A stretch of DNA of 64,000 nucleotides from Macrostomum hystrix (lineage: Eukaryota > Animalia > Platyhelminthes): the NCBI GenBank assembly GCA_950097015.1, contig CATNEN010000007.1:3100001-3164000 (forward strand), written 5' to 3'. This document shows positions 3,001-45,314 of this stretch, one piece after another. The position numbers were made by a program, and so were the translations under genes. Below the pieces are notes generated by a model, which did not search any database, had not been told where the DNA came from, and saw nothing but the letters and a program-made list of their open reading frames with translations. The first letter of the stretch is position 1, and each line of letters opens with the position of its first letter.

Positions 3001-3579
3001 CCCGCAGTTGACAATGATCCCCCCGTTGACAATGATCCCCCATTTGATGATGACTCCCGATTGATGATGATCCCAGTTGACAATGATCTCAAGTTGAACA
3101 TGATCCCCCATTTGATGATGATTCCCCAGTTGACAATTATCCCCCAGTTGACAATGATCCCCCAGTTGACAATGATCCCCCAGTTGACAATGTTCCCCCA
3201 GTTGACAATGATCCCCCCGTTGACAATGATCCTCCATTTGATGATGACTCCCAATCAATGATGATCCCCAGTTGACAATGATCCCCAGTTGACCATGAAC
3301 CCCTATTTGATGATGATTCCCCAGTTGACAATTATCCCCCAGTTCACCATGATCCCCCAGTTTAAAATGGTCCCCCAGTTTACAATGATCCCCCAGTTGA
3401 CAAAGATCCCCCAGTTCACAATGAACCCCCAGTTGACAATGATCCCCCAGTTGACAATGATCCCCCAGTTGACAATGATCCCCCAGTTGACAATGATCCC
3501 CCAGTTGACAATGATCCCCCAGTTGACAATGAACCCCCAGTTGACAATGATACCCCAGTTGACAATGATCCCCCAGTTG
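1..3579. repeat. 18-bp minisatellite array, copy A (consensus GTTGACAATGATCCCCCA), runs off the window start
   Basis: Directly visible tandem unit. Higher-order periods of 485 bp (111 vs 596) and 1674 bp (111 vs 1785) show up as identical ORF-track translations. Confidence 0.98.
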
Positions 3580-4149
3580 CCAATATTTTCTCATGTACTC
3601 ACTGCATTCTTGTTTGCATCGGTATTTACTCTTGTAATTAGGCTCATGACTTTTGTAATAAGATCCTGGAGAGACGATTGGGAGCATTTTTAATGAGAAT
3701 ATAATTTTTTTTCGGAGGATGAGCACCCTAGGTTTGGGGTCTTGAGTTTGGGGAATGGGATTTTAGTGCTAATTTGATTGTCTTGGCACGCTTTTTGCAG
3801 CTTCGCTATTTTGTGCATGATCTCTTAGGGAGTGGCTGCGATAATTTGTTTTGTCCAAGTTCACAAACTGGAAAGTATTTTTTTTGGCGGGGGAACCTTG
3901 TTCCTTCAGGAAAGGTAATGGTTTGTGCAATAAGGAGGCTGCGATAATTTTTTGTCCTAGATATTCAACTTACAAACTGATGTGGAATATTAAAAGTAGA
4001 GAATTTAGAATATGGAGACGGAGTTTTTTAGAGAGAGGCGGGGACCCTTTTTTTCCTGATCTCTTCGGGAATAATAAAAGTAATGGTTTGTGGATAATGG
4101 AGGCTGCGATTATTTTTGTCCTAGAAGGCCCCTCTTGCATACTACTCGA

Positions 4150-4687
4150 TTCTGAGCCTAGATAACTATCGATGCTGAGCCTAGATAACTATCAATGCTG
4201 AGCCTAGGTAACTATCAATGCTGAGCCTAGATAACTATCAATGCTGAGCCTAGGTAACTATCGATGCTGAGCCTAGATAACTATCAATGCTGAGCCTAGA
4301 TAACTATCAATGCTGAGCCTAGATAACTATCAATGCTGAGCCTAGATAACTATCAATGCTGAGCCTAGATAACTATCAATGCTGAGCCTAGATAACTATC
4401 AATGCTGAGCCTAGATAACTATCAATGCTGAGCCTAGATAACTATCAATGCTGAGCCTAGATAGCTATCAATGCTGAGCCTAGATAACTATCAATGCTGA
4501 GCCTGGATAGCTATCAATCCTGTGCCTAGATATCTATAAAAATGTTGAGCCTAGAAATCTATAAGAATGTTGAGCCTAGATATGGATCGATTCTGAGCCT
4601 AGGAATCTATTAATTCTAAGCCTAGATATCTATCAATGCTGAGCATAGATATCTATCAATGCTGAGCCTAGATATCTATCAATGCTT
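4150..4687. repeat. 23-bp minisatellite (AATGCTGAGCCTAGATAACTATC), copy A
   Basis: Tandem unit visible, degenerating toward the 3' end. Confidence 0.95.
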
Positions 4688-4690
4688 TTG

Positions 4691-4759
4691 CAAGTAAGTA
4701 AGCAAGTAAGCAAGTAAGTAAGCAAGTAAGTAAGTAAGTAAGCAAGTAAGTAAGCAAGT
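4691..4759. repeat. (AAGT/AAGC)n microsatellite, copy A
   Basis: Direct reading. Confidence 0.9.
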
Positions 4760-5040
4760 ATAATCAAGAAATGTTACTTTCTGCCAAGAAAGGCCGATCA
4801 CTTGAATCAATGCAGTTCTCAGCTGTTGCCTTTGGAGTATGCTGTGATGTGAATTTTGAATCTGCTATAATTGAAATCTGCTATATCTGCTAAATGAGTT
4901 TGAATAAAACTCAATCAAAAAAATAAAAAAATATCTCAGTGCCGAACAGATAACAGAAGCCAGCTCAGCCTGTACACATTGGGCAGTAATTATCTCGCCA
5001 GTGGGGTTGACACAGCTATGCACATTTGGGTGAGAAATTC

Positions 5041-8000
5041 CTTATCAGTACGCTCGCCTAACAAAACTGGCTCTGATGCAATCATTAAAATTGGCACAGG
5101 AGCCTCACTGTGCACAAGCTGAAAACAAGAATGCATTAGAAAAGCCTATTTAAAACTGTTTTTCGAATATTTAATCCCCTTGCCAATGGAATTAAGCTTA
5201 ATAAAATTACGTGTACCGATTCCGGCCCATTTGTGATCTTTTGGCGAAGGAATTTTGAAAATCGGTTGAGCCGTTCGGGAGCTAGTCGATTGCAAACAAG
5301 CAAGCAAGATTTTCATTTTTAGTATATAAGACTAGCTGCCTTCGCTACCCTCTGGGTAGCCTCCCTGTGAGTTCTTATCAGTACGCGCGTGCGTTATCAA
5401 AACTGGCTCTGATGCAATCATTAAAATTGGCACTGGAGGCCTCACTGTGCACAAGCTGAAAACAAGAATGCATTAGAAAAGCCTATTTAAAACTGTTTTT
5501 CGAATATTTAATCCCCTTGCCAATGGAATTAAGCTTAATAAAATTACGTGTACCGATTCCGGCCCATTTGTGATCTTTTGGCGAAGGAATTTTGAAAATC
5601 GGTTGAGCCGTTCGGGAGCTAGTCGATTGCAAACAAACATACAAGATTTTCATTTTTAGTATATTACTAGCTGCCTTCGCTACCCTCTGGGTAGCCTCAC
5701 TGGAGTTCTTATCAGTTCGTTATCAAAACTGGCTCTGATGCAATCATAAAAATTGGCACTGGAGCCTCACTGTGCACAAGCTGAAAACAAGAATGCATTA
5801 GAAAAGCCTATTTAAAACTGTTTTTCGAATATTTAATCCCCTTGGCAATGGAATTAAGCTTAAAAAAAATACGTGTACCGATTCGGGCCCATTTGTGATC
5901 TTTTGGCGAAGGAATTGTGAAAATCGGTTGAGCCGTTCGGGAGCTAGTCGATTGCAAACATACAAACATACAAACATACATACAAGATTTTCATTTTTAG
6001 TATATTAGACTAGCTGCCCTTCGCTACCCTCTGGGTAGCCTACCTTGAGTTCTTATCAGTGCGTTATCAAAATTGGCTCTGATGCAATCATTAAAATTGG
6101 CACTGGAGGCCTCACTGTGCACAAGCTGAAAACAAGAATGCATTAGAAAAGCCTATTTAAAACGGTTTTTCGAATATTTAATCCCCTTGGCAATGGAATT
6201 AAGCTTAATAAAAATACGTGTACCGATTCCGGCCCATTTGTGATCTTTTGGCGAAGGAATTGTGAAAATCGGTTGAGCCGTTCGGGAGCTAGTCGATTGC
6301 AAGCAAGCAAGATTTTCATTTTTAGTATATTAGAAGACTAGCTGCCTTCGCTACCCTCTGGGTAGCCTCCCTGTGAGTTCTTATCAGTACGCGCGTGCGT
6401 TATCAAAACTGGCTCTGATGCAATCATTAAATTTGGCACTGGAGGCCTCACTGTGCACAAGCTGAAAACAAGAATGCATTAGAAAAGCCTATTTAAAACA
6501 GTTTTTCGAATATTTAATCCCCTTAGCAATGAAATTAAGCTTAATAAAAATACGTGTACCGATTCGGGACCAATTGTGATCTTTTGGCGAAGGAATTGCG
6601 AAAATCGGTTGAGCCGTTCGGGAGCTAGTCGATTGCAAACAAGCAAGCAAGATTTTCATTTTTAGTATATTAGACTAGCTGCCTTCGCTACCCTCTGGGT
6701 AGCCTCACTGGAGTTCTTATCAGTTCGTTATCAAAACTGGCTCTGATGCAATCATTAAAATTGGCACTGGAGGCCTCACTGTGCACAAGCTGAAAACAAG
6801 AATGCATTAGAAAAGCCTATTTAAAACTGTTTTTCGAATATTTAATCCCCTTGCCAATGGAATTAAGCTTAATAAAATTACGTGTACCGATTCGGGACCA
6901 ATTGTGATCTTTTGGCGAAGGAATTTTGAAAATCGGTTGAGCCGTTCGGGAGCTAGTCGATTGCAAACAAACATACAAGATTTTCATTTTTAGTATATTA
7001 TATAAGACTAGCTGCCTTCGCTACCCTCTGGGTAGCCTCCCTGTGAGTTCTTATCAGTACGCGCGTGCGTTATCAAAACTGGCTCTGATGCAATCATTAA
7101 ATTTGGCACTGGAGGCCTCACTGTGCACAAGCTGAAAACAAGAATGCATTAGAAAAGCCTATTTAAAACAGTTTTTCGAATATTTAATCCCCTTAGCAAT
7201 GAAATTAAGCTTAATAAAAATACGTGTACCGATTCGGGACCAATTGTGATCTTTTGGCGAAGGAATTGCGAAAATCGGTTGAGCCGTTCGGGAGCTAGTC
7301 GATTGCAAACAAGCAAGCAAGATTTTCATTTTTAGTATATTAGACTAGCTGCCTTCGCTACCCTCTGGGTAGCCTCACTGGAGTTCTTATCAGTTCGTTA
7401 TCAAAACTGGCTCTGATGCAATCATTAAAGTTGGCACTGGAGCCTCACTGTGCACAAGCTGAAAACAAGAATGCATTAGAAAAGCCTATTTAAATCTGTT
7501 TTTCGAATATTTAATCCCCTTGGCAATGGAATTAAGCTTAATAAAAATACGTGTACCGATTCCGGCCCATTTGTGATCTTTTGGCGAAGGAATTGCGAAA
7601 ATCGGTTGAGCCGTTCGGGAGCTAGTCGATTGCAAACATACAAGCAAGCAAGCAAGCAAGCAAGATTTTCATTTTTAGTATATTAGACTAGCTGCCTTCG
7701 CTACCCTCTGGGTAGCCTCACTGGAGTTCTTATCAGTTCGTTATCAAAACTGGCTCTGATGCAATCATTAAAATTGGCACTGGAGCCTCACTGTGCACAA
7801 GCTGAAAACAAGAATGCATTAGAAAAGCCTATTTAAAACTGTTTTTCGAATATTTAATCCCCTTTGCAATGAAATTAAGCTTAATAAAATTACGTGTACC
7901 GATTCCGGCCCAATTGCGATCTTTTAGTGAAAGAATTTTGAAAATCGGTTGAGCCGTTCGGGAGCTAGTCGATTGCAAACAAGCAAGCAAGCAAGCAAGA

Positions 8001-9041
8001 TTTTCATTTTTAGTATATTAGACTAGCTGCCTTCGCTACCCTCTGGGTAGCCTCCCTGTGAGTTCTTATCAGTACGCGCGTGCGTTATCAAAACTGGCTC
8101 TGATGCAATCATTAAATTTGGCACTGGAGGCCTAACTGTGCACAAGCTGAAAACAAGAATGCATTAGAAAAGCCTATTTAAAACTGTTTTTCGAATATTT
8201 AATCCCCTTGGCAATGGAATTAAGCTTAATAAAAATACGTGTATAGTTGTCCCCATATTTGGCATCTTTTGGTGAAGAAATGGTGAAAATTGGTTGAGCC
8301 GTTCGGGAGAAAATCAATTACGAACAAGCAAGCAAGATTTTCATTTTTAGTATATTAGACTAGCTGCCCTTCGCTACCCTCTGGGTAGCCTCCCTGTGAG
8401 TTCTTATCAGTTCGTTATCAAAACTGGCTCTGATGCAATCATTAAAATTGGCACTGGAGCCTCACTGTGCACAAGCTGAAAACAAGAATGCATTAGAAAA
8501 GCCTATTTAAAACTGTTTTTCGAATATTTAATCCCCTTGGCAATGAAATTAAGCTTAATAAAAATACGTGTACCGATTCCGGCCCATTTGTGATCTTTTG
8601 GCGAAGGAATTGTGAAAATCGGTTGAGCCGTTCGGGAGCTAGTCGATTGCAAACATACAAACATACAAACAAGATTTTCATTTTTAGTATATTAGATAGA
8701 CTAGCTGCCTTCGCTACCCTCTGGGTAGCCTCACTGGAGTTCTTATCAGTTCGTTATCAAAACTGGCTCTGATGCAATCATTAAAGTTGGCACTGGAGCC
8801 TCACTGTGCACAAGCTGAAAAGAAGAATGCATTAGAAAAGCCTATTTAAAACAGTTTTTCGAATATTTAATCCCCTTGGCAATGGAATTAAGCTTAATAA
8901 AAATACGTGTACCGATTCCGGCCCAATTGCGATCTTTTAGTGAAAGAATTTTGAAAATCGGTTGAGCCGTTCGGGAGCTAGTCGATTGCAAACATACAAA
9001 CATACAAACATACAAACAAGATTTTCATTTTTAGTATATTA
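5041..9041 (-). mobile_element. Head-to-tail array of 12 non-autonomous mini-Helitrons (~328-343 bp each)
   Basis: On the minus strand each unit begins TC(TAATATACTAAAAATG...) and ends with the perfect hairpin GCTACCC-AGA-GGGTAGC, 8 nt, then CTAG. Terminal CTAGs are at 5332, 5667, 6010, 6338, 6675, 7008, 7345, 7688, 8023, 8360 and 8701. Units carry an internal (CAAG/CAAA/CATA)n microsatellite and an AAAATCGGTTGAGCCGTTC core. The 5'-TC, hairpin and CTRR-3' pattern is the canonical Helitron signature. Confidence 0.85.
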
Positions 9042-9135
9042 CTAGCATGTTTTGCCCCCCTTCGGGGAGCAGAAATATTTTTAATTCGTCTTGTATATAC
9101 TTTTTAGCAGCTGTATTTTCAGCTTTTTAATCCTA

Positions 9136-12100
9136 CAATGATCCCCCAGTTGACAATGATCCCCCAGTTGAAAATGATCCCCCAGTCAACAATGATTCCC
9201 CAGTTGACAATGATCCCCCAGTTGATGATGACTCCCCATTGATGATGACCCCCCAGTTGACAATGTTCCCCCAGTTGACAATAATCCTCCAGTTGACAAT
9301 GATCCCCAGTTGACAATGTTCCGCAAGTTGACAATGATCCCCCAGTTGACAATGATCCCCCAGTTTACAATAATCCCCCAGTTGACAATAATCCTCCAGT
9401 TGACAATGATCCCCAGTTGACAATGTTCCCCAAGTTGACATTGATCCCCCAGTTAACAATGATCCCCCAGTTAACAATGATCCACCAGTTGGTGATGATC
9501 CCCCAGTTGACAATGATCCCCAAGTTTAAAATGATCCCCCAGTTGACAATGATCCACCAGTTGATTATGATCCCCCAGTTGACAATGATCCCCAGTTTAA
9601 AATGATCCCACTGTTGAGAAAGATCCACCAGTTGATGATGATCCCCCAGTTGACGATGATCCCCCAGTTGACAATGATCCACCAGTCGACAATAATTCCC
9701 CAGTTGACAATGATCCCCCAGTTGATGATGACTCCCCATTGATGATGATCCCCCAGTTGACAATGATCGACCAGTCGACAATGATTCCCCAGTTGAGATT
9801 GATCCCCCGATTGATGATGATCACCCAGTTGACAATGATCCCCCAGTTGATGATGACTCCCCATTGATGAGGATCCCCAGTTGAGAATGTTCCCCCAGTT
9901 GACAATGATCCCCCAGTTGACAATAATTCCCCAGTTTACAATGATTCCCCTAGTTAATAATGATCACCCAGTTGACAATCATCCGCCAGTTGACAATGAT
10001 CCCCTAGTTCAAATTGATCCCCCAGTTGACAATTATCCCCCAGTAGACAATTATCCCCCAGTTGACAATGATCCCCCAGTTGACAATGAACCCCCAGTTG
10101 ACAATGATCCCCCAGTTGACGATTATCCCCCAGTTTAACATGATCCCCTATTTGATGATGATTCCCCAGTTGACAATTATCCCCCAGTTGACAAATATCC
10201 CCCAGTTGACAATGATCCTCCAGTTGACAATGATCCTCCAGTTGACAATAATCCCCCAGTTAACCATGATCCCCCAGTTGACAATGATCCCCCAGTTGAC
10301 AATGATCACCCAGTTAACGATGATCCACCAGTTGACAATGATCCCCCAGTTGACAATGATCCGCCAGTTCACAATAATCCCCCAGTTGACAATGATCCCC
10401 CAGTTGAAAATGATCCCCCAGTTGACAATGATCCCCCAGATGACAATGATCCCCCAGTTGACAATGATACCCCAGTTGACAATGATCCCCCAGTTGGCCA
10501 TGATCCCCTAGTTGACAATGATCCCCCAGTTGACAATGATCCCCCAGTTGACAATGATCACCCAGTTGACAATGATACCCCAGTTGACAATGATCCCCCA
10601 GTTGACAATGATCACCCAGTTGACGATGATCCCCCAGTTGACAATGATCCCCCAGTTGACAATGATCCGCCAGTTGACAATGTTCCCAAAGTTGACAATG
10701 ATCCCCCAGTTGACATGATCCCGCAGTTCACAATGATCACCCAGTTGACAATGATCCCCCAGTTCATGATGATCACCCAGTTGACAATGATCCCACAGTT
10801 GACAATGATACCCCAGTTGACAATGATCCCTCAGTTGACAATGATCCCCCAGTTGACAATGATCACCCAGTTGACAATGATCCCCCAGTTGACAATTTTC
10901 CCCCAGTTGACAACGATCCCCCAGATGACAATGATCCCCCAGTTGACAATGATACCCCAGTTGACAATGATCCCCCAGTTGGCCATGATCCCCTAGTTGA
11001 CAATGATCCCCCAGTTGACAATGATCCCCCAGTTGAAAATGATCACCCAGTTGATAACGATACGCCAGTTGACAATGATCCCCCAGTTGACAATGATCAC
11101 CCAGTTGACGATGATCCCCCAGTTGACAATGATCCCCCAGTTGACAATGATCCGCCAGTTGACAATGTTCCCAAAGTTGACAATGATCCCCCAGTTGACA
11201 TGATCCCGCAGTTCACAATGATCACCCAGTTGACAATGATCCCCCAGTTCATGATGATCACCCAGTTGACAATGATCCCACAGTTGACAATGATCCCCCA
11301 GTTGACAATGATCCCTCAGTTGACAATGATCCCCCAGTTGACAATTTTCCACCAGTTGAAAATGGTCCCCCAGTTGACCATGATCCGCCAGTTGACAATG
11401 ATCACCCATTTGACGATGATCCACCAGTTGACAATGATCCCCCAGTTGACAATGATCCGCCAGTTGGCCATGATCCCCTAGTTGACAATGATCCACCAGT
11501 TGACAATGATCCCCCAGTTGACAATGATCACCCAGTTGACGATGATCCCCCAGTTGACAATGATCCACCAGTCGACAATAATTCCCCAGTTGACAATGAT
11601 CCCCCAGTTGATGATGACTCCCCCTAGTTAATAATGATCACCCAGTTGACAATCATCCGCCAGTTGACAATGATCCCCTAGTTCAAATTGATCCCCCAGT
11701 TGACAATTATCCCCCAGTAGACAATTATCCCCCAGTTGACAATGATCCCCCAGTTGACAATGAACCCCCAGTTGACAATGATCCCCCAGTTGACGATTAT
11801 CCCCCAGTTTAACATGATCCCCTATTTGATGATGATTCCCCAGTTGACAATTATCCCCCAGTTGACAAATATCCCCCAGTTGACAATGATCCTCCAGTTG
11901 ACAATGATCCTCCAGTTGACAATAATCCCCCAGTTAACCATGATCCCCCAGTTGACAATGATCCCCCAGTTGACAATGATCACCCAGTTAACGATGATCC
12001 ACCAGTTGACAATGATCCCCCAGTTGACAATGATCCGCCAGTTCACAATAATCCCCCAGTTGACAATGATCCCCCAGTTGAAAATGATCCCCCAGTTGAC

Positions 12101-13981
12101 AATGATCCCCCAGATGACAATGATCCCCCAGTTGACAATGATACCCCAGTTGACAATGATCCCCCAGTTGGCCATGATCCCCTAGTTGACAATGATCCCC
12201 CAGTTGACAATGATCCCCCAGTTGACAATGATCACCCAGTTGACAATGATACCCCAGTTGACAATGATCCCCCAGTTGACAATGATCACCCAGTTGACGA
12301 TGATCCCCCAGTTGACAATGATCCCCCAGTTGACAATGATCCGCCAGTTGACAATGTTCCCAAAGTTGACAATGATCCCCCAGTTGACATGATCCCGCAG
12401 TTCACAATGATCACCCAGTTGACAATGATCCCCCAGTTCATGATGATCACCCAGTTGACAATGATCCCACAGTTGACAATGATACCCCAGTTGACAATGA
12501 TCCCTCAGTTGACAATGATCCCCCAGTTGACAATGATCACCCAGTTGACAATGATCCCCCAGTTGACAATTTTCCCCCAGTTGACAACGATCCCCCAGAT
12601 GACAATGATCCCCCAGTTGACAATGATACCCCAGTTGACAATGATCCCCCAGTTGGCCATGATCCCCTAGTTGACAATGATCCCCCAGTTGACAATGATC
12701 CCCCAGTTGAAAATGATCACCCAGTTGATAACGATACGCCAGTTGACAATGATCCCCCAGTTGACAATGATCACCCAGTTGACGATGATCCCCCAGTTGA
12801 CAATGATCCCCCAGTTGACAATGATCCGCCAGTTGACAATGTTCCCAAAGTTGACAATGATCCCCCAGTTGACATGATCCCGCAGTTCACAATGATCACC
12901 CAGTTGACAATGATCCCCCAGTTCATGATGATCACCCAGTTGACAATGATCCCACAGTTGACAATGATCCCCCAGTTGACAATGATCCCTCAGTTGACAA
13001 TGATCCCCCAGTTGACAATTTTCCACCAGTTGAAAATGGTCCCCCAGTTGACCATGATCCGCCAGTTGACAATGATCACCCATTTGACGATGATCCACCA
13101 GTTGACAATGATCCCCCAGTTGACAATGATCCGCCAGTTGGCCATGATCCCCTAGTTGACAATGATCCACCAGTTGACAATGATCCCCCAGTTGACAATG
13201 ATCACCCAGTTGACAATGATCCCCCAGTTGACAATTTTCCCCCAGTTGACAACGATCCCCCAGATGACAATGATCCCCCAGTTGACAATGATACCCCAGT
13301 TGACAATGATCCCCCAGTTGGCCATGATCCCCGAGTTGACAATGATCCCCCCAGTTGACAATTAATACCCAGTTGACAATGATCCCCTAGTTGACAATGT
13401 TCCCGCAGTTGACAATGATCCCCCCGTTGACAATGATCCCCCATTTGATGATGACTCCCGATTGATGATGATCCCAGTTGACAATGATCTCAAGTTGAAC
13501 ATGATCCCCCATTTGATGATGATTCCCCAGTTGACAATTATCCCCCAGTTGACAATGATCCCCCAGTTGACAATGATCCCCCAGTTGACAATGTTCCCCC
13601 AGTTGACAATGATCCCCCCGTTGACAATGATCCTCCATTTGATGATGACTCCCAATCAATGATGATCCCCAGTTGACAATGATCCCCAGTTGACCATGAA
13701 CCCCTATTTGATGATGATTCCCCAGTTGACAATTATCCCCCAGTTCACCATGATCCCCCCAGTTTAAAATGGTCCCCCAGTTTACAATGATCCCCCAGTT
13801 GACAAAGATCCCCCAGTTCACAATGAACCCCCAGTTGACAATGATCCCCCAGTTGACAATGATCCCCCAGTTGACAATGATCCCCCAGTTGACAATGATC
13901 CCCCAGTTGACAATGATCCCCCAGTTGACAATGAACCCCCAGTTGACAATGATACCCCAGTTGACAATGATCCCCCAGTTG
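9136..13981. repeat. 18-bp minisatellite array, copy B
   Basis: Same unit as copy A. 10402-13981 appears identical to 1-3579 except for one extra C near 13750. Confidence 0.98.
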
Positions 13982-14551
13982 CCAATATTTTCTCATGTAC
14001 TCACTGCATTCTTGTTTGCATCGGTATTTACTCTTGTAATTAGGCTCATGACTTTTGTAATAAGATCCTGGAGAGACGATTGGGAGCATTTTTAATGAGA
14101 ATATAATTTTTTTTCGGAGGATGAGCACCCTAGGTTTGGGGTCTTGAGTTTGGGGAATGGGATTTTAGTGCTAATTTGATTGTCTTGGCACGCTTTTTGC
14201 AGCTTCGCTATTTTGTGCATGATCTCTTAGGGAGTGGCTGCGATAATTTGTTTTGTCCAAGTTCACAAACTGGAAAGTATTTTTTTTGGCGGGGGAACCT
14301 TGTTCCTTCAGGAAAGGTAATGGTTTGTGCAATAAGGAGGCTGCGATAATTTTTTGTCCTAGATATTCAACTTACAAACTGATGTGGAATATTAAAAGTA
14401 GAGAATTTAGAATATGGAGACGGAGTTTTTTAGAGAGAGGCGGGGACCCTTTTTTTCCTGATCTCTTCGGGAATAATAAAAGTAATGGTTTGTGGATAAT
14501 GGAGGCTGCGATTATTTTTGTCCTAGAAGGCCCCTCTTGCATACTACTCGA

Positions 14552-15161
14552 TTCTGAGCCTAGATAACTATCGATGCTGAGCCTAGATAACTATCAATGC
14601 TGAGCCTAGGTAACTATCAATGCTGAGCCTAGATAACTATCAATGCTGAGCCTAGGTAACTATCGATGCTGAGCCTAGATAACTATCAATGCTGAGCCTA
14701 GATAACTATCAATGCTGAGCCTAGATAACTATCAATGCTGAGCCTAGATAACTATCAATGCTGAGCCTAGATAACTATCAATGCTGAGCCTAGATAACTA
14801 TCAATGCTGAGCCTAGATAACTATCAATGCTGAGCCTAGATAACTATCAATGCTGAGCCTAGATAGCTATCAATGCTGAGCCTAGATAACTATCAATGCT
14901 GAGCCTGGATAGCTATCAATCCTGTGCCTAGATATCTATAAAAATGTTGAGCCTAGAAATCTATAAGAATGTTGAGCCTAGATATGGATCGATTCTGAGC
15001 CTAGGAATCTATTAATTCTAAGCCTAGATATCTATCAATGCTGAGCATAGATATCTATCAATGCTGAGCCTAGATATCTATCAATGCTTTTGCAAGTAAG
15101 TAAGCAAGTAAGCAAGTAAGTAAGCAAGTAAGTAAGTAAGTAAGCAAGTAAGTAAGCAAGT
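14552..15161. repeat. 23-bp minisatellite plus (AAGT/AAGC)n, copy B
   Basis: Matches 4150-4759 at a +10402 offset. Confidence 0.95.
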
Positions 15162-15442
15162 ATAATCAAGAAATGTTACTTTCTGCCAAGAAAGGCCGAT
15201 CACTTGAATCAATGCAGTTCTCAGCTGTTGCCTTTGGAGTATGCTGTGATGTGAATTTTGAATCTGCTATAATTGAAATCTGCTATATCTGCTAAATGAG
15301 TTTGAATAAAACTCAATCAAAAAAATAAAAAAATATCTCAGTGCCGAACAGATAACAGAAGCCAGCTCAGCCTGTACACATTGGGCAGTAATTATCTCGC
15401 CAGTGGGGTTGACACAGCTATGCACATTTGGGTGAGAAATTC

Positions 15443-16068
15443 CTTATCAGTACGCTCGCCTAACAAAACTGGCTCTGATGCAATCATTAAAATTGGCACA
15501 GGAGCCTCACTGTGCACAAGCTGAAAACAAGAATGCATTAGAAAAGCCTATTTAAAACTGTTTTTCGAATATTTAATCCCCTTGCCAATGGAATTAAGCT
15601 TAATAAAATTACGTGTACCGATTCCGGCCCATTTGTGATCTTTTGGCGAAGGAATTTTGAAAATCGGTTGAGCCGTTCGGGAGCTAGTCGATTGCAAACA
15701 AACATACAAGATTTTCATTTTTAGTATATTAGATAAGACTAGCTGCCTTCGCTACCCTCTGGGTAGCCTCACTGGAGTTCTTATCAGTTCGTTATCAAAA
15801 CTGGCTCTGATGCAATCATTAAAGTTGGCACTGGAGCCTCACTGTGCACAAGCTGAAAACAAGAATGCATTAGAAAAGCCTATTTAAAACAGTTTTTCGA
15901 ATATTTAATCCCCTTGGCAATGAAATTAAGCTTAATAAAAATACGTGTACCGATTCCGGCCCATTTGTGATCTTTTGGCGAAGGAATTTTGAAAATCGGT
16001 TGAGCCGTTCGGGAGCTAGTCGATTGCAAACAAACATACAAGATTTTCATTTTTAGTATATTAGAAGA
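15443..16068 (-). mobile_element. Two mini-Helitron units (copy B of the array)
   Basis: Same unit as 5041-9041, with one internal terminator CTAG at 15739. Confidence 0.85.
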
Positions 16069-17568
16069 TAAAGCCTTGTCAAACAAGCAATAATTTCATG
16101 CAAATACATGAATTTTTTTCTGGTGGGGCGAGCCCCCATAAATACTCTTAATTAATGTAAATTGCGATAAGTTTCATGCGTGTCAAGTTGTAGTGAATGT
16201 GAAGTTGTACAGTTCATTGTATGCATGATGCAATATGACAACCTCACAATAACAATCAGTCTGAACCGGTCTACATAGTTATGTGATAGCTAGCCGAAAA
16301 TTCCGTGCCTTTATCGCAGGTAAAACTGTGAAGGAAACTGCCGGTGTAGCTCACTACATGTAGCTTTGTCATGAATTTAGAATTGGGCCTGCAATCGTAG
16401 GATTTTAGAATAACGTTTGCAATTAGTCGAACCTATTGCCTAAAGTCAGTTTTGGCTGCTAATGCATTGTATACTTTTAATGCAAATTGTCATCCAATAC
16501 AATTAGGTGGACATTTAGAAGTACATTAGAAGTAATTTAGGTGGACATTTATCTCTGGACAAATAAACCAACTTCATCAGTAGAATGTATAACGCAATTT
16601 ATATTTGAAATTCATTTTTCTCAGTCCCATGATGTTTACTTTACACTCTCTCGTAGCTACAGCTGGCGTGTTTGCGATTGGACACTGTTTATTGTATAAA
16701 TCATCTATTGATATACCTTACCTATTTACCCTGTTATGTGCTACTCAAGCAGGTTTCATTTGTTTGTTCTGCTCAGGGGAGGGCCATTTTTGTTTAACTG
16801 CATGTTCGTTTCATATCCGGCTACCAAGCTTCCATCGCGCATTAGTCAATAGCTTCGGCAGTACACTCATTGTGAGAAGTTAGAAAAGGTCTAAGTAATG
16901 CAGTTTTTTGTTCACAGAGATACGATGCTTTACAGTTAAAAGACATGCGTGCAGGGTATTAAGCCTACTTTTTCTGCTCTTAAAATATGATGGAATCATT
17001 TCGGCAGCAAAAACTAATCGCAGAGACCTTTAATCTCAGCATCACTTTCCCGTTAATTTCATCCACCGATTATGTCTTTTACTGACTGAAGAGTGCGTGC
17101 GGAAGACTTCAATTTATTCAGTTTCAGCTTTGGGATTGTAGCCATCTTTGAGATGCTTTTGTTGAAGGTGTGTGTATAACCCTATAGCCAGTCAGTATCT
17201 CGAGGTCCGTCAGGCCAAGAAAACGCGCCGCGGCCAGAGGTCGGGTCCAGAGGTCTTGTAATGACAGAAATGTGGGTAACCCGGTCGTGTTAGGAACTTA
17301 GGGCACGAGGCATTTTCATATAATTTTGTTATATTTGCGTCGAACTCTGAGTATGAGACATAGAATAAGCATTGATTTGCTGGGTTACCAGTGTTGGAAT
17401 TCTGGTTTCCAGGGGTTCAGAAAAGCAACAAATCGACCATTCTCAGGTATTAAGTCTCTGAAGTCTCCTTTTCACTACATGTACGCTCGTAAGTTGATCG
17501 TACTTAACTAGCTATGCAGGTTTGGATGCCTGGTCAGAAGTCTTTTTATCAGCTAGATCAATCGCTGA

Positions 17569-19164
17569 TTATATTTTTTTCTCTGAGGACCCGGGCATTT
17601 CCGACAGCCGGTAACAGCTGAGAGTCTTGCGATCAGCCGAGGCTGCCCCGCAGCAGCGTCTGCAGGCCCGGAAGCAGACCATCGCGCCAACTGCACGTCG
17701 AAATTCGGCGCTTCGCTTCAGCAGAACGAAGACGTTGGTGGTCTGGTTGAGTAGCGCCAGAGCCTTGCTGGCGTAGACAATGTTGGCCAGCAGCAGCAGA
17801 TAGTCGATGTGGTCGGCTACCTTGAGTGTCTCCATGGCTGCGTCCAGCATCGGGTGGAATATCAGCACTGGTAGGTAGAGAACCAGGTAGATAATGGCCA
17901 GAATAACCACGAGGATCGTTCCGTTGAGATCATCAACAGTAGCTCTCTGCGTTCTGTTGAGTTCTCCTTGAAGCGATCGCCGATTGCGCATCGCTGCCAG
18001 GACCCGTTTGACTAGGAAAACATTCAGAAGCAGCATGACCAGAATGGGCAGAGTTGGCGGATTCGATACCAAGCTGGAGTAGAACAGCATGGTCCAGCGA
18101 GCGAACGGTTCGTCCATCCTGTAGCAGTAGATCATAGCGGCCCTTTCAGACACCATCACTTGCATGTGACGCACCAGTGCACCAGTCGGCAATGTGGCAA
18201 CAAGCGATACTAAGAACGTGGCAACAAGGGCCCGAATGGCGCTCTGGCGCCGAGACTGCATAGAGGCCAGCGGACGGTAGATGGCCCAGGCGCGGTCGGC
18301 TACCAGAAGGAGCAGCCAGAGGCAGGCGAGCAGCTGGCAGAAATTGACGGAGTATCTAGAACCGACGAGATTCGTGGAATGATTTCGAGGCAATAGTCTG
18401 CGAGAGTGTGACGCATGTTCTTTACACTGACCCTGAGCACACACACGACACAAATACGTGCACACAGAAACACACACAAACACACAGGTATGCACATCTC
18501 CCCTGACTTATCATCATCATCAGCAGTGGGCACGACCACTGAGTCTTGTGGGGGTGGCCTTCTTGGTGGTAAATTGCACGACAGTCCCCGAGCCCAGTCT
18601 CTTTCGAGTCTCTGCGCGCCTTTTGCGCCCAAAATCGAGTTCGAAACTATGAAACTCGGGAGATACTCAAATGGATTTCTATTGGAAATTTTAAGCATCA
18701 ACATACAAATTAAGTTGTGGTTTGCCATATATTTTTCGTACTATTAATCGCTACTGAGCAATAAAAATTGTCCTCTCACACCTGCAAAATTTGCACCACA
18801 CTTCGCTCAGGTTGTAGAGGTAGAAGCCGTAGTGACCTCGGGTCAGCCAGGACAAGCCCTTGCTAAGGAATCCGTGGAGAATTCCGGTGATGAGTAGATT
18901 TAGACAATCGGCCATTGCGATGCATCCCAGGTACAGATTCTGCCTACTGCTTCGCATGTCAGTCAGCATGACCTTGGCTACGATGACGTTTCCAACTAGG
19001 CCAATGAGCACTACAGCCGGCATCAGGATGCCTGACATCGAGCCGATGAAGTGGGACATGCCGCAGTAGAACTTTCTCGCCGGATCGATACTCAGACAAT
19101 CGCGCACTAGGCTCATGGGGCTCTCTATGAAGCCCACAATGCGTATTGCTTCAGTGCTGTTCAT
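17569..19164 (-). CDS. Orphan class A (rhodopsin-like) peptide-type GPCR, 2 exons, ~389 aa
   Basis: Exons 19164-18782 and 18355-17569, joined by a GT-AG phase-2 intron to give WCKFCR|YSVNFCQLL; total 1170 nt. Seven hydrophobic segments, GN in TM1, LxxAD in TM2, DRA for DRY, and a degenerate TM7 (NQTTNVFVL). Confidence 0.88.
18425..18600 (-). mobile_element. SINE family B, internal fragment (in the GPCR intron)
   Basis: Similar by eye to 40735-40900 (CACACAGGT(A/G)TG(C/T)ACATCT...CCTGACTT; GTAAATTGCACGAC). Confidence 0.6.
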
Positions 19165-19859
19165 TCTCTGCTGGAGGTGTCATTCCTACACGCGTAGATG
19201 CTGTAGCTCTCTAACCCAAGCTGATTTATGAATGCAGCTTTTTTATTTCCACCAATAAAAATCCGTATCCATTAGTTTGCGGCTTGACTGAGGCATTTGT
19301 GTCATCACATTTGGTTCTTGCATCTGGTTGGTTAAAGCAATTTCAGCTTTCATTCTCTAGCGCCCATTGCATGGATTTTATACTCATTCTATATTTTTTA
19401 GGCAAATCGAATCAGCTCATGCATACAGGGACTGAATGGTCACACTTTTTCCTCTAATTTGATGTTGATGTCGCGTTGCGACTTGTTGTAGCTTGTTGTT
19501 GTTAAGGCTACTTTAGCAGTTTGTGATGGGGATTCAGGGATAACTGCTTAGACTAGGCGCCAAATCGATTATCGTCACATTCTTCTTGTGTGACAATGGA
19601 AGGAATGACAGAAAGTGTCTGAAGTGGAGACGCGTGTCAATTCTCCCTTGCGCTTGTTAACCAAATCGAAACAGTCCCATAAACAACACTGTCCACCAGC
19701 TCTGCCGATAACACGCCAATAGAAAAGACACACAAGGGACAGTTATGTAAACGACTGAGTAAAACTGAAATTCTCATTTATTGATCCGAGATGTATACTT
19801 TTTTTCAGACAATGACTTCGGACTTAAGCAAAATTTTCGCTTAGTTAATCAGATGATTA

Positions 19860-20055
19860 ATAATTTATAACACCTGCCCCAATCAGGCCAGTTGTGCAGC
19901 CGACACCACAGCCGCAGCTATTGCGCGGCGCATCTGAAGGCTGCGTACAGGTGTTCGGTCCATGGACTGGGGGACGCCACACACGTCCTCAATTGCCCTA
20001 GCTAATGCTGGTACCCATTTATCAGATGGGTGAACTGAAGCAGTGCAGATTAAAG
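19860..20055 (-). mobile_element. SINE family A, 5'-truncated copy
   Basis: Near-identical to 24440-24610 (GTGCAGCCGACA...GTCCATGGACTGGGGGACGCCAC...GCTGGTACCCATTT). Confidence 0.8.
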
Positions 20056-20149
20056 TTCAAAGTTAATAACAAAGTTCAGCAATTTGACCGTACATAGCTC
20101 GTATCTACGTTCAAACGTACAGAAGACCACGCTATTTCTGCCCATGGAG

Positions 20150-20620
20150 AAACACCACAGAAGGATTTCAAATACCCACTGCCTATACTTCACGACAGCT
20201 CCCAAACCGAATGACCGATTTTCGTGAAAGTCCACCATGGATCAACATTTTCCGCCCTTTACGGTGCACTAACGTTCAAAGCCGTCCGACGTCAGAATCG
20301 TCGAGATATTCAGCAATTGTTGTCGAAGATCCTGACAAGGACAACTAGCATATTGGTCTGTATAAATTTCTATGTCGTCGAATCCGCACATGGTTCAGTA
20401 ATTAAAAAAACTACCAATATAATTAAAATATAATTAATAGCATATCACTAATAGCCTATATTTTCCATGATGAATTTTTGTAAGCCAAAAAAGTATGCCT
20501 GACTTGGTGCCTTTGTAATTCTGAAAGCTGCTTCATCGGATAGTGCTGACATTTTTTGCCATTGTTCTGGATTTCATGGCGATCGGTTTAATATTTTGGG
20601 AGACAGAGAAAAATAAAAAT
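20150..20620. mobile_element. Dispersed repeat family C (unclassified, internal inverted repeat)
   Basis: Similar to 38225-38620 and 41510-41900 (AAATACCCACT...AGCTCCCAAAC...GTCGAGATATTCAGC...TTGTCGAAGATCCTG). Confidence 0.7.
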
Positions 20621-21656: not shown

Positions 21657-21829
21657 GGCCAATCAGCCAATCAGCAATCAGCAATCAGCCAATCAGCAAT
21701 CAGCAATCAGCCAATCAGCAATCAGCCAATCAGCAATCAGCCAATCAGCAATCAGCCAATCAGCAATCAGCCAATCAGCAATCAGCCAATCAGCAATCAG
21801 CCAATCAGCCAATCAGCCAATCAGCAATC
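21657..21829. repeat. (AATCAGC/AATCAGCC)n microsatellite containing 12 CCAAT boxes
   Basis: Direct reading. Confidence 0.9.
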
Positions 21830-21860
21830 AATGAATCAAATAATCAGTTCATACTTTCGT

Positions 21861-24800
21861 TCAGACACTGCCAACCGGTTCGGCCGCGTTGCCCTGCCTC
21901 CGAGACGTCAGGTTCGTCATCTGGACGCTGCTGCTAGTCTGTCTGCGGCACTGGCGCCGGTTCTGGTCGCGGGCTCCCGTTGCGCCCGCAGGTCCACTCG
22001 CAAGAGCAGCAGCTGCTTCAGCCGCAGTCGGTGGCTGCCTTCGTCGGGATCCCAGCAGAGCGGCCTCGACGTCTTCCTCGCGCCCAGCATCTCCACCGCG
22101 CCGAAGGTTGTAATTGTTGTTGTTGATATTATTGAGGTTGAAGTTGTTATTGCTCCGACGGTTTTGGCTGTGATTGCCGGCTGGACGCCTGCCGCAGGTC
22201 ACCACCTGTTTGTAATCGGTGATATTTCTCAGAGTTGTTTAGTTTTTAATCAAAGAGCAGTGCAGGTATTATTACAGAAATTCGAGTAGAAAGAGCATGA
22301 AAACACGGCACAGCCAATCACGCAAACCCATCCACCCAACCACCTGCCCTGTGCAAGAGGGCTGAGGGAAATTGCACATCATTTTGGTGCCAGTAGACCT
22401 GCAGCCAGCGGGTGGCAATTCTGCGACTGACTAGGAGTGTACATTTGACTCGACTTTCTCATTCTCGAGTTTTTCTCTGCAGCCCGACCCCTCCCCTTAC
22501 CTCGATGAAGTGAGCTCGGAATCGGCAGCTGATGATGCACAGCGTGATGGGGTTGCTGGCCGAATAAGCGGATGGCAGCAGCTTGGCAACCGTCTTGAGC
22601 CACACGAACAGCACGGGCACCCGGCTGGCGGTGAAGTAGTGCAGCATGAGGATGTAGTCCAGGCCCCAGGCGGCGAAGAACACAGCGGAGAGGCACAGGG
22701 CCAGCTTGGCCAGTTTCCGCCGGCCTTCGATCTGGCTGGCAGCCGAGCTGTTGGCGGCCCTCTCGGTGGCTGCGGCGGCGCGCTCGTGCGCCCTGGCGGT
22801 GCGCATCAGCTTGCAAGCCATGAGGCCATAGAACACGGCGATCAGGGAGCCGGGGATCAGGTAGTACAGCAGCAGCTTGGCCACCAGCATACTTGTGCGG
22901 TAGCCATGGCCCCAGCTCTCAGGGAATGGGTAGCAATGTGGCACCAGCAGGCAGTTGTGCAGCTTCTGCTCAATGTGGCTGCTCAGAGCGTAGGGTGTCG
23001 CCAGGAGCACTGCGATTTCGTGGGCATCATTTTTGGGAGATAACTGAGGATTTGCTGATGCCAATTTCCTATTTGACAGTGGATTTCTGTTATTTTAAGT
23101 TAGATTCTCCATGTCAGTGGGGTGAGATCTCCATGTCAATGGGGTGAGATTCTCCATGTCAGTGGGGTGAGATTCTCCATGTCAATGGGGTGAGATTCTC
23201 CATGTCAGTGGGGTGAGATTCGCCATGTCAGTGGGGTGAGATTATCGATGCCAGTGGGTGAGATTCTCTATGTCAATGGGGTGAGATTCTCTAATGCCAG
23301 TGGGTGAGATTCTCCATGCCAGTGGGTGAGATTCTCCATGCCAGTGGGTGAGATTATCGATGCCAGTGGGTGAGATTCTCCATGCCAGTGGGTTAGATTC
23401 TCTATGCCAGTGGGTGAGATTCTCCATGCCAGTGGGTGAGATTCTCCATTTCAGTGGGGTAGCTCAAGTACTGAAATATAATGTAGCTAGATTTAGTTCT
23501 CGTTAAGGAAAATAATTAATAATAATCAATTAAAAAATAATTAATCGAGATTGAAATATGTAGGCTACGTAAAGTACTTTAAGTTGTTGCACAGTTGCAC
23601 AGTTTAAAATGAAAAAAAATTAAAATTAAATTGATACACAACTTTTAATACAATTTGATTGTTGGATACAGTCACCAACAGTGCTTTAATAGTTTTTAAA
23701 AAAAAATTTTTTTCTCTGTGAAAGCGTAGCTCGGCAGTACGCGGCCTACAAGAAAAGATTCGAGAGAAAAAAACTGCTGTTTTGAATAATGCTACTAATA
23801 GTAGTGCAAAAGAATCTCACCGCACAGCAACTCACCTGCAGCCGCCCAGATGATGCCCAAACCGAGCTTTGGCAACAGACTTCTCGAGTGCTTCAGGTTG
23901 GACATTGGTCTAGTGATGGCGAGACAGCTGAGGGAGGTTTGTGCCGGCTTTGATTTCCAACAATTCCAAGAATAGGCGGATCTACTTTGCAAACCGAAAA
24001 ACAATGATAAATTATGCATCGGAATGTGCTAAAAAATGAATTTCACACTTTGTCAAGACAAATTTGGCCTGAAAATCAATCAATCAAGAATAAATGGATT
24101 GGTAGCCATGGCGGCTCATATGGCTTGATCAACATTCGGGCCGGCTCAGTCAGCCACGGCCGCCAGTTTGCAGAGTCATCGGCTTATTAATTTATCATTC
24201 TGGGTCATGGGAACTGACCATGCAAAACTGGGGAACACTGAGTCCCCATTGAGTAATTGAGTAAAGCAAAGCTCAGCTTTGTGTTCTAAATTTATAGAAA
24301 AATGTTTTGAAATAGCAAGAAACGTCACTCAAACGTCACATTTTGAACTCAAAACTTTACATTTCTTGGGCTCGCTGTGTGCAAATATGGCATTGAAATT
24401 AGTGTCAATAATAATTGATTATTAATAATTGATTACACCTGCCCCTATAGGGCCAGATGTGCAGCCGACAGCACAGCCGCAGCTATTGCGCGGCGCATCT
24501 GAAGACTGCGTACAGCTGTTCAGTCCATGGACTGGGGGACGCCACACCCACCTTCAATTATCCCAGCTGATGCTGGTACCCATTTAACAGCGGGGTGAAC
24601 TGAAGCAATGCAGAGTTAAGTGTCTTGCTAAAGGACACAAATTGTTTCAGTGGAGTCGGGAATCGAACTCCCGACCTTCAAGTCGTAAGTCCGACGCCCT
24701 AACCACTAGGCTACAACCCGAGTGTCAATACAAATATATATACCCATTGCTATCAGCAATAGGACTACCAAGCCATGTTGCCGATCGTTTATATACCCAT

Positions 24801-28387: not shown

Positions 28388-28473
28388 ATGTTGTCATCGC
28401 GCCTGTTGTCATCGCGCCTGTTGTCATCGCGCCTGTTGTCATCGCGCCTGTTGTCATCGCGCCTGTTGTCATC
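28388..28473. repeat. 15-bp tandem repeat (TGTTGTCATCGCGCC)
   Basis: Direct reading, about 6 copies. Confidence 0.9.
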
Positions 28474-28526
28474 GATAAGTGTTGCCATTCAGCATGCGAG
28501 TGCTTCCATTTTTTAGCGAAAAAAAT

Positions 28527-29060
28527 GTCTGACAAGTTATGCTATTGTCTGACACAGTTAGGCTATTGTCTGACACAGTTATGCTATTGTCTGACACAGT
28601 TATGCTATTGTCTGACACAGTTAGGCTATTGTCTGACACAGTTATGCTATTGTCTGACACAGTTATGCTGTTGTCTGACACAGTTGAGCAATTGTCTGAC
28701 ACAGTTATGCTATTGTCTGACACAGTTATGCAATTGTCTGACACAGTTATGCAATTGTCTGACACAGTTATGCGATTGTCTGACACAGTTATGCAATTGT
28801 CTGACACAGTTATGCAATTGTCTGACACAGTTATGCTATTGTCTGACACAGCTATGCTATTGTCTGACACAGTTATGTAACTGTCTGATACAGTTATGTA
28901 ACTGTCTTACACAGTTGTGCAATTGTCTGACACAGTTATGCTATTGTCTGACACAGCTATGCAATTGTCTGACACAGTTATGTAACTGTCTTACACAGTT
29001 GTGCAATTTTCTGACGCAGTTATGCAATTGTCTGACACAGAAATGCAGGTTTCTGACAGA
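28527..29060. repeat. 21-bp minisatellite (TTGTCTGACACAGTTATGC[TA/AA])
   Basis: Direct reading. Confidence 0.95.
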
Positions 29061-29649: not shown

Positions 29650-30270
29650 CCGACCTCATCGAACCAAACTTGTCCCCTCGAGTGTGCATTGCTGACTTAT
29701 CTAACCTAGCTCGTCCCCTCGAATGTGCATTGCTACTCATCGAACCCAAAATCTTCCCCTCGAGTGTACATTGCTGACTCATCGAACCCAGCTCGTCCCC
29801 TCGATTTTACATTGTTGACTCATCGAACCCAATTTCTTCCCCTCTAGTGTACATTGCTACTCATCGAACCCAACATCTTTCCCTCGAGTGTACATTGCTA
29901 CTCATCGAATTCAACTTCTTCCCCTCGAGTGTACATTGCTACTCATCGAACCCAACATCTTTCCCTCGAGTGTACATTGCTACTCATCGAATTCAACTTC
30001 TTCCCCTCGAGTGTACATTGCTACTCATCGAACCCAATTTCTTCCCCTCGAGTGTACATTGCTGACTTATCGAACCCAACTTCTTCCCCTCGAGTGTACA
30101 TTGCTGACTTATCGAACCCAACTTCTTCCCCTCGAGTGTACATTGCTGACTTATCGAACCCAACTTCTTCCCCTCAAGTGTACATTGCTACTCATCGAAT
30201 TCAACTTCTTCCCCTCGAGTGTACATTGCTACTCATCGAACCCAACTTGTCCCCTTGAATGTAGATTGCT
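29650..30270. repeat. ~40-bp degenerate minisatellite (CCCCTCGAGTGTACATTGCTACTCATCGAACCCAACTTCTT)
   Basis: Direct reading. Confidence 0.9.
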
Positions 30271-38224: not shown

Positions 38225-38620
38225 TTTTCCCAATGGGAAAAGACACCGCGCTATTTCAAATACCCACTTCCTATTTCATAATAGCTCCCAAACTGAATGA
38301 CCGATTTCCTGAATCAAAATTTTCTGCTTTTTACGATGAACTCACTTTCAAAGCCGTCCGACGTCAGCATGGTCGAGATATTCAGCGATTCTTGTCGAAG
38401 ATCCTGGTCACAAGGCAAACAACTCGTAACATTGCTCTGTATAGGCCTCTATGGTGACATGATGAGATTTTTTAACAGAAAATTTATGCCTCTATGGGTA
38501 GTTTTTCCTAGCTGACACCTCGACGAGAATCGTTGAATATCTCGACGATACCGATGCTTTGTAATTCTAGAAGTTGTTTGATCGGATAGAGCGGAAAATT
38601 TTAGCGCACATGATGACTCA
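38225..38620. mobile_element. Dispersed repeat family C copy
   Basis: Contains a 26-bp imperfect inverted repeat, 38373-38398 and 38520-38545. Confidence 0.7.
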
Positions 38621-44989: not shown

Positions 44990-45314
44990 CGCGGTGATTT
45001 TCCGTGAAGATGTGAGTGCGCTTCGATGAGTTGTTGACTCCCAGTATTTATCCTAAAAGTGACCATCAACTCGCAAGGTTGAGGAAGACCTTGCTTTTCA
45101 GTGCTGTCAATTCTAGCTTTAAATTCATTAAATGAACCCTTTGAAATGAGCTTCGACAAAGCAGAAAAAAAAATTCTGCGCATGAAGAAATATTAAGGGT
45201 TGTCTAGGAAAAATCTCTGGAAAAATCCCTATGAAATATCCTGTAGAATCATTGAAATCTCGATAATATATTTTCTAGAGTCATTGAAGTCTTAGTGGGA
45301 TGCCTCGTAATAGG

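Follow-up and report, generated by a model that had tools for sequence, protein, structure and literature searches.

How did 6.7 kb of minisatellite-rich DNA come to lie between Helitron ends in Macrostomum hystrix, and why does it stand there twice, separated by a row of much smaller Helitrons? The window, meaning the whole 64,000-nt stretch of contig CATNEN010000007.1 analyzed here, allows both questions to be approached at base resolution.

Layout of the train and its mini units

On the minus strand, positions 1-16068 make up the 5' part of a one-directional, head-to-tail Helitron train. The train contains two element types, a 337-bp mini Helitron and a 6.7-kb element, E, which have a 5' head of about 290 nt in common. 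Read on the minus strand, a mini unit runs from 5' TC..AATATAC to a 7-bp hairpin, an 8-nt spacer, and CTAG-3', and units are joined end to start. The features are as follows.

9042-15738, minus strand: E, copy B, a composite non-autonomous Helitron of 6,697 bp, comprising head, uniq2, AAGY, 23-mer array, uniq1, 18-mer array, and T2 tail
15443-15738, minus strand: head of E, from alignment to mini units; junction CTAG/TCTTATCTAATATAC at 15739
15163-15442, minus strand: uniq2, the cargo adjoining the head, from public-contig comparison
15092-15162, minus strand: AAGY (AAGT/AAGC) microsatellite, from Tandem Repeats Finder
14554-15088, minus strand: 23-mer minisatellite, 23 copies, from Tandem Repeats Finder; summed contig depth very high
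13987-14553, minus strand: uniq1, AT-rich with a degenerate internal repeat, from public-contig comparison
9135-13986, minus strand: 18-mer minisatellite, about 270 copies, from Tandem Repeats Finder
9042-9135, minus strand: T2 tail, with hairpin 9053-9071 and CTAG 9042-9045; the 3' end of E abuts TAATATAC of the next unit
15739-16068, minus strand: 5'-most unit of the train, a complete mini Helitron flanked as A/TCTTCTAATATAC
5332-9041, minus strand: 11 complete mini Helitrons of 327-343 bp, head to tail, 88-100% mutual identity
1-5331, minus strand: E-prime, copy A of the composite, truncated where the window begins; positions 1-5299 are identical to 10402-15701

Tandem Repeats Finder called the 18-mer arrays at 1-3584 and 9135-13986, the 23-mer arrays at 4152-4686 and 14554-15088, an array of the roughly 337-bp unit at 5062-9041, and the AAGY microsatellites. 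A 3,895-nt public contig corresponds to 16041-19935 with zero differences and starts 28 nt inside the mini unit at 15739-16068; its break at 16041 places the boundary between repeat and unique DNA at about 16068. This contig backs the right boundary drawn at 16068 by the first-pass annotation, which also gave the flank as A; the plus strand indeed has T at 16069. The same annotation had taken 9042-16068 as one composite. The composite proper holds for 9042-15738, but 15739-16068 is a separate complete mini unit. No copy of the mini unit, T2, uniq1, uniq2, or either minisatellite occurs in 16069-64000, and no RepHel gene lies within the window.

The mini terminator, T1 (hairpin plus CTAG, minus strand), is found at 5332, 5667, 6010, 6338, 6675, 7008, 7345, 7688, 8023, 8360, 8701, and 15739, and in all 12 units it consists of a 7-bp stem, a 3-nt loop, an 8-nt spacer, and CTAG. 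The first array holds 11 complete units followed by a terminator-less head (5041-5331), and the second holds one complete unit and a terminator-less head (15443-15738). TC(T..)AATATAC opens 11 of the 13 unit starts. The junctions between units come in seven different spellings, two of them (at 5667 and 9042) lacking the TC, which indicates that more than recombination went into building at least the mini train. Neither the mini unit nor E has terminal inverted repeats, as aligning the 5' 40 nt with the 3' 80-100 nt in inverted orientation gives a best match no better than shuffled sequences do.

The composite element and its relatives in the genome

The heads of E align to the mini units at 92-97% identity (87-88% to the most divergent unit) as far as ACTGATAAG. 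Past this point, about 40 nt before the mini 3' end, they diverge, and both hairpin and CTAG are absent; the stretch standing in place of T1 is unfolded (-0.6 kcal/mol). Alignment thus confirms that the leftmost mini of each array (5041 and 15443) has no terminator, as first proposed. Also reproduced was the description of about 6.4 kb of unrelated DNA leading to a different hairpin-CTAG (9042-9075) that abuts the next 5' end. This second terminator, T2, is the first hairpin-CTAG downstream of the terminator-less head. Read along the minus strand, T2 consists of an 8-bp (7 + 1) stem closed by a GAA loop; a 7-8-nt spacer separates this hairpin from CTAG at 9045-9042, and TAATATAC of the next unit follows directly, exactly at the unit junction. 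The geometry of T2 is that of T1 (3-nt loop, 7-8-nt spacer, CTAG), and both strands of the other 48 kb of the window are free of sites with this hairpin-CTAG geometry. The T2 tail and the cargo have no sequence similarity to mini units.

E has a single 5' head and, in T2, a single hairpin-CTAG site; two fused complete elements are ruled out, since no further head or terminator was found inside it. A Helentron or Helitron2 type is likewise excluded by the lack of subterminal inverted repeats and by a 5' flank of A instead of a T/T target. The parent head is kept, the parent terminator is missing, and a new CTRR end lies downstream, as expected of a read-through chimera. That this non-coding block of 6.7 kb is built like a chimeric non-autonomous Helitron is a supported reading, and E may move through T2, a terminator seen once in the sequences compared. 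A coding role for the 18-mer array was rejected, since the largest ORFs in it measure 100-246 aa and no long frame is open. Its translation matches bacterial hexapeptide-repeat proteins by periodicity alone, and the contig of the best such match, L001, carries an unrelated 18-mer. Searches of public data gave no exact-protein match for two cargo ORFs and no word match for a mini-unit ORF, and neither T2 nor a conserved core of the mini unit turned up when metagenome contigs were scanned for the exact patterns.

Public contigs of the same organism were compared with 13987-19986, and 4,614 of them could be placed, mostly 85-99% alike. The comparison used contigs and not raw reads, and summed contig depth differs from true copy number; it reaches 8,400-19,000 for uniq1, 2,316 for uniq2, and 72,000-115,000 for the mini units, against 85.5 for the single-copy flank. 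By this measure the genome would hold about 55-220 single-copy equivalents of uniq1, about 9-27 of uniq2, and about 1,000 of the mini units; mini units and cargo alike are spread over many diverged contigs. The AT-rich block, uniq1, had been described as unique, which is true within the window but not in the genome, where public contigs reveal it as multi-copy. At position 14027, copy B of E has T, and most other uniq1 copies have C.

The junction between head and cargo also recurs. A diverged 770-nt contig bridges head and uniq2 (15379-15504, 85% identity), and a second contig joint, at 15430, shows the junction letters in diverged form. This junction is therefore present in at least two diverged copies elsewhere, indicating that the composite is a family and not an accident at this locus. 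Some other copies skip segments, passing from 15077 to 15462 or from 15373 to 16032. Judged from these sequences, E appears to belong to a non-autonomous, multi-copy Helitron family with satellite cargo, one whose head/cargo junction would be older than the locus. Dispersal of minisatellite cargo by Helitrons is plausible because parts of E are multi-copy in the genome.

Duplication of the 10.4-kb block and its possible history

Copies A and B of E are identical over 1-3358 at an offset of 10401 and over 3359-5299 at an offset of 10402, and their sole difference in 5,299 bp is a run of five versus six C at 3359. The offsets reported in the first pass are therefore correct, but block identity does not continue past 5299/15701. 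That point lies about 40 nt into the head and does not coincide with a Helitron end. Over these last roughly 40 nt the two heads differ by three substitutions and a 5-nt indel, and each spelling is present in other mini units; in copy A, the final 32 nt or so (5300-5331) have a mini-type haplotype (TGCTTGCTTG, TCTTATATAC) unlike copy B. The upstream units, at 5332 and 15739, are 98% identical, with many differences scattered throughout. Perfect duplications are nested nearby: within the 18-mer array, 9947-11540 equals 11621-13214 (1,594 nt, offset 1,674), further exact repeats lie at offsets of 485 and 1,189, and the mini units at 6338 and 7008 are identical at an offset of 670. A duplication boundary within homologous repeats and perfect nested duplications close by are both signs of unequal exchange.

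We consider it slightly better than an even bet that the train holds mini and E types, with E drawn from a multi-copy family and its second copy produced by unequal exchange or template switching. A Helitron can gain a new 3' end when its hairpin is lost and read-through follows, or by lying directly against another Helitron (PMC4778049), and tandem repeats carried by Helitrons then spread through unequal crossover (PMC10048060). The family may well have originated once and elsewhere, when T1 was lost and a downstream terminator was used, possibly one from a neighboring Helitron in a train. Very recently, homology-driven unequal exchange or a replication template switch could have created the second E copy, which is separated from the first by 11 mini units; in that event the head of E would have exchanged with a mini unit from the array next after E. 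Perfect duplications of 485, 670, and 1,674 bp within the arrays may stem from the same process. Both the chimeric origin and the exchange mechanism are what we infer from the pattern of identities, and for the second E copy unequal recombination is more likely than transposition.

It is unlikely that a single genomic E was written twice during assembly, by looping through mini units or by placing 2- and 12-unit length alleles in tandem. The two copies do match except for one homopolymer length, a typical consensus error, and the region is built of repeats abundant genome-wide. Nevertheless, the T2/mini junction at 9041/9042 is a precise Helitron-type joint of a kind that an assembler would not make up, the data must contain both contexts given that the head 5' ends and upstream units are not the same, and assembly programs tend to merge such repeats, not to multiply them.

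The first-pass annotation held that a mini Helitron lost its terminator at this locus, that the transposase then ran on across 6.4 kb of neighboring host DNA as far as a chance hairpin-CTAG, and that the resulting 7-kb element was copied head to tail by rolling circle, either in a concatemer or by inserting again at the end of a Helitron. Such a history is improbable. In its favor, the head lacks T1 and T2 is the next hairpin-CTAG; the joint between T2 and the following 5' end is base-precise and spelled like CTAG/TAATATAC at 5667, and read-through after hairpin loss has been shown experimentally (PMC4778049). Formation at the locus is contradicted by a cargo present at about 10-220 single-copy equivalents and by a head/cargo junction common to diverged contigs from elsewhere, and the exact repetition of T1 geometry in T2 would be unlikely for a fortuitous site. 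Its second part fares no better: identity stops at a haplotype switch inside the head and the upstream units differ, contrary to a concatemer or simple re-insertion. A rolling-circle concatemer with a 10.4-kb period is ruled out, since the upstream unit and the first 40 nt or so of the head are not the same in both copies.

No more probable than local read-through is the idea that E transposed whole, from its own 5' end to T2, onto the 3' end of a resident mini, after which gene conversion from a neighbor rewrote its first 40 nt or so. Transposition followed by such a short 5'-end conversion would leave the same picture, and the exactness of the joints, their differing spellings, and the two that lack TC suggest that units were joined many times over in separate events. 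It needs two events without any substitution in 5.3 kb, however, one of them a hypothetical end-directed integration. A broader proposal is quite improbable: Helitron trains would grow by transposase-mediated joining to resident ends, through end-directed integration or multi-unit circles, with the TC-less joint between T2 and TAATATAC and the varied 5' stubs (TCT-, TCTA-, TCTTA-, TCTTATA-) as footprints and the 10.4-kb block as a multi-element transposition unit. An ordinary macrosatellite or higher-order repeat with coincidental hairpin-CTAG motifs would fit the perfect nested duplications at several scales, yet is very hard to credit given TC..hairpin-8 nt-CTAG ends in 12 units, an unrelated T2 of the same geometry at a junction, none in a 2 x 48 kb control, and about 1,000 single-copy equivalents of the mini units in many diverged contigs.

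Significance and comparison with known systems

Under the favored reading of family origin and unequal exchange, the locus offers a base-resolved view of two-step minisatellite spread, in which packaging between Helitron ends is followed by local growth through unequal exchange in a train. A common head with interchangeable terminators can yield new element types. Repeat annotation will misread such blocks as satellites or unique DNA, and perfect kb-scale duplicates need long-read confirmation before a mechanism is inferred from them.

The locus is a clear example of a known phenomenon, all of whose components have been described in bats, flies, frogs, and bivalves. Helitrons with novel 3' ends, namely Helibat subfamilies and Helraiser hairpin deletions (Grabundzija et al. 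2016, PMC4778049), resemble E in keeping the parental 5' part, losing the parent hairpin and CTAG, and carrying transposon-type DNA on to a different CTAG-type end; their new ends, too, often lie where one Helitron abuts another. Unlike these cases, the new end of E is a full terminator with the same stem, loop, and spacer geometry, and the 6.4 kb between consists of repeat-family DNA, not single-copy host sequence.

Oyster Cg_HINE, Drosophila DINE-TR1, and Xenopus Heli2Xen, with 166-bp minisatellites, are, like E, non-autonomous rolling-circle elements with a central tandem array, and their arrays are similarly length-variable and amplified further by unequal crossover (PMC10048060, PMC12001565). 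E differs from these tandem-repeat Helitrons and Helentrons in its canonical Helitron ends and lack of subterminal inverted repeats. Its monomers are also very short (18 and 23 bp) and reach about 270 copies, whereas the cited review gives usually up to 10 and at most about 90. The head-to-tail Helitron arrays of bats, maize, flies, and frogs (cited in PMC12001565) run in one direction, 3' end to 5' end, as this train does, and in satellite birth from tandem transposable element insertions (McGurk and Barbash 2018, listed in PMC10048060) copy number likewise grows by unequal exchange. What sets the train apart from known head-to-tail arrays is its mixture of two element types that begin with a common head but end in different terminators, together with a latest duplication unit that is a 10.4-kb multi-element block.

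Structure of the Helitron train

The window is DNA of an animal. Its positions 1-16068 are repeats throughout and form a head-to-tail chain of Helitron-type elements on the minus strand. The satellite-carrying train is real in structure, and its parts, in order from the right boundary, are:

16068 to 15739, minus strand: first, a complete mini unit, 330 bp
15738 to 9042, minus strand: second, element E (copy B), a composite non-autonomous Helitron, 6,697 bp
9041 to 5332, minus strand: third, eleven complete mini units
5331 to 1, minus strand: fourth, a second copy of E (copy A), cut by the window start

The base preceding the outermost 5' TC of the train is A. One public run of the source organism yielded a 3,895-nt contig equal to 16041-19935 with zero differences. 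It starts 28 nt inside the mini unit, as expected when a k-mer assembly is interrupted at the edge of a repeat; a boundary near 16068, where the first-pass annotation had placed it, is therefore real.

Each mini unit starts with TC(T)AATATACTAAAAATG, apart from two joints that lack TC, and ends in the terminator T1, a GC-rich hairpin (7-bp stem, 3-nt loop) separated from CTAG by an 8-nt spacer; the next unit begins immediately after CTAG. Between the 5' 40 nt and the 3' 80-100 nt, inverted matches were no better than those in shuffled sequence; the ends are therefore of the canonical Helitron type, and Helentron-type ends are ruled out. Seven spellings fill the space between CTAG and AATATAC at the unit junctions 5332-9042 and 15739 (none+TA, TCT, TCTTCT, TCTATCT, TCTTATCT, TCTTATATA and TCTTAT), a pattern resembling short stubs of interrupted 5' ends. 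These spellings, together with the two joints without TC (one of them the T2 joint behind E), indicate that the mini train was built by several independent joining events, compatible with Helitron activity.

The first ~290 nt of E, its head, match most mini units at 92-97% identity, and the most divergent one at 87-88%, up to ACTGATAAG. The similarity stops ~40 nt short of the expected hairpin and CTAG, and no fold was found in the stretch of E that follows. The cargo after the head comprises, in order on the minus strand:

uniq2 (15163-15442), 280 bp
AAGY microsatellite
23-mer array, 23 copies
uniq1 (13987-14553), 567 bp, AT-rich
18-mer array, about 270 copies
tail, 94 nt

No likeness of cargo or tail to the mini units was found, and a scan of the cargo revealed no additional head motif and no additional hairpin-CTRR site. 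E ends in a different terminator, T2, with a stem of 7-8 bp closed by the loop GAA and, beyond a spacer of 7-8 nt, CTAG at 9045-9042; its geometry equals that of T1 position for position, the sequences being unrelated, and TAATATAC of the next mini unit follows its CTAG directly. Because no site of T2 geometry occurs on either strand in the other 48 kb of the window, the position of T2 exactly at a unit junction is not chance. What had first been read from the sequence is confirmed, including the head without hairpin and CTAG, the cargo order and the joining of T2 to the next unit.

The 18-mer array was rejected as an open reading frame. Its translation has a hexapeptide periodicity and drew matches to bacterial left-handed beta-helix proteins (hexapeptide transferases; P0001-P0006 and L001, an ENA metagenome contig, 5981-6213), a false lead when arrays of this type are used in protein searches.

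Duplication of the 10.4-kb block

Copy A at 1-5299 is exactly copy B at 10402-15701, bar one C5/C6 run at 3359. The identity of the 10.4-kb repeat described in the first-pass annotation is thereby confirmed, but the repeat ends inside the head, at 5299/5300, ~40 nt in. Beyond this point lie three substitutions (TGCTTGCTTG vs TGTATGTTTG) and a 5-nt indel (TCTTATATAC vs TCTTATCTAATATAC). Each microsatellite spelling is also found in other mini units, and the indel is common among family contigs; the change at 5299/5300 is a recombination boundary, not mutation.

The simplest account is an unequal exchange or template switch with the head of E as one partner and a mini unit from the array after E as the other; the precise T2/unit joint would then have existed before the duplication. 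The two E copies could instead be an assembly error, in keeping with perfect copies whose sole difference is one homopolymer, although two features speak against it: the T2 joint is precise, and the heads lie in two distinct contexts. Transposition of E followed by a short conversion tract is also conceivable. The mini unit upstream of copy A, m5332, and the one upstream of copy B, m15739 (named by terminator position), show many scattered differences. These exclude the proposed rolling-circle concatemer with a 10.4-kb period, and they would not be expected either if E had simply re-inserted from its own 5' end.

Within the 18-mer array, an exact 1,594-nt repeat at an offset of 1,674 (93 x 18) occupies 9947-11540 and 11621-13214; it is present in both E copies and is therefore older than the 10.4-kb event. 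More exact repeats occur at offsets of 485 and 1,189, and a pair of mini units at a distance of 670 bp shows no difference. The 18-mer array grows through large-block duplication.

The family in the genome and the neighbouring sequence

Contigs of four public runs (X1-X4) were aligned to 13987-19986 at ≥85% identity, yielding 4,614 contigs, mostly 85-99% alike. Against a word depth of 85.5 for the single-copy flank in X1, summed contig depth, which is not copy number, reached 8,400-19,000 for uniq1, 2,316 for uniq2, up to 189,000 for the 23-mer and 72,000-115,000 for the mini units. Numerous contigs are nevertheless separate, have roughly single-copy depth and differ by 10-15%, which shows many diverged copies, and the so-called unique blocks uniq1 and uniq2 are family DNA. 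A search for repeats of the source organism in other collections returned no matches.

The head/cargo junction is bridged by a 770-nt contig at single-copy depth (15379-15504, 85% identity), and in a second contig uniq2 passes at 15430 into the head, with the same junction letters in a diverged spelling. Structural variants among the contigs join 15077 to 15462, without AAGY and uniq2, and 15373 to 16032. Since diverged contigs carry the junction, it is older than this locus; this age and the multi-copy blocks argue against the local read-through into host DNA initially proposed. That interpretation is supported in part: the contig data favour its broader claim, the carriage of minisatellite arrays around this genome by Helitron ends.

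The following features lie right of the train:

17569-19164, minus strand: two-exon rhodopsin-family GPCR gene (Pfam 7tm_1 / Srw), GT..AG intron 18356-18781
19852-20056, 24417-24621, 45314-45498: ~205-bp interspersed repeat, copies 78-88% identical
20165-20364, 38253-38443, 41519-41704: second interspersed repeat
21660-21830, 23102-23458, 25631-26576, 28389-29058, 29655-30000: five further unrelated minisatellites

The GPCR gene has the same orientation as the train and lies 1.5 kb from its 5' end. Runs X2-X4, labelled 'DNA?', contain contigs with exactly the intron 18356-18781 removed and therefore behave as RNA. In these runs, parts of 13987-16068 (uniq1, uniq2, the 23-mer and the mini units) also occur in near-identical form, at depths above the neighbouring gene, and the Helitron family is probably transcribed. 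Summed contig depth over the ~205-bp repeat is ~6,500 times single copy. The repeat is probably SINE-like; tRNA T-arm-like hairpins adjoin two of its copies, and ARAGORN made no tRNA call there. The five minisatellites, with periods of 15/22, 22, 17, 15 and 21, and 41/82, lie within 14 kb of the train, in a region with unusually many short-period arrays.

Origin of the chimera and known systems

Published Helitron behaviour (PMC4778049) suggests two routes by which E could have arisen: T1 may have been lost and read through, or a deletion may have joined a mini unit to a T2-type Helitron next to it. In bats and in cell culture, new 3' ends are documented both after loss of the hairpin and at places where Helitrons abut (PMC4778049). 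Helitron tandem arrays and minisatellite-bearing Helitrons have been described in Xenopus (PMC12001565), and in oysters and Drosophila tandem repeats are central in Helitron/Helentron elements and were later expanded by unequal crossover, as reviewed (PMC10048060).
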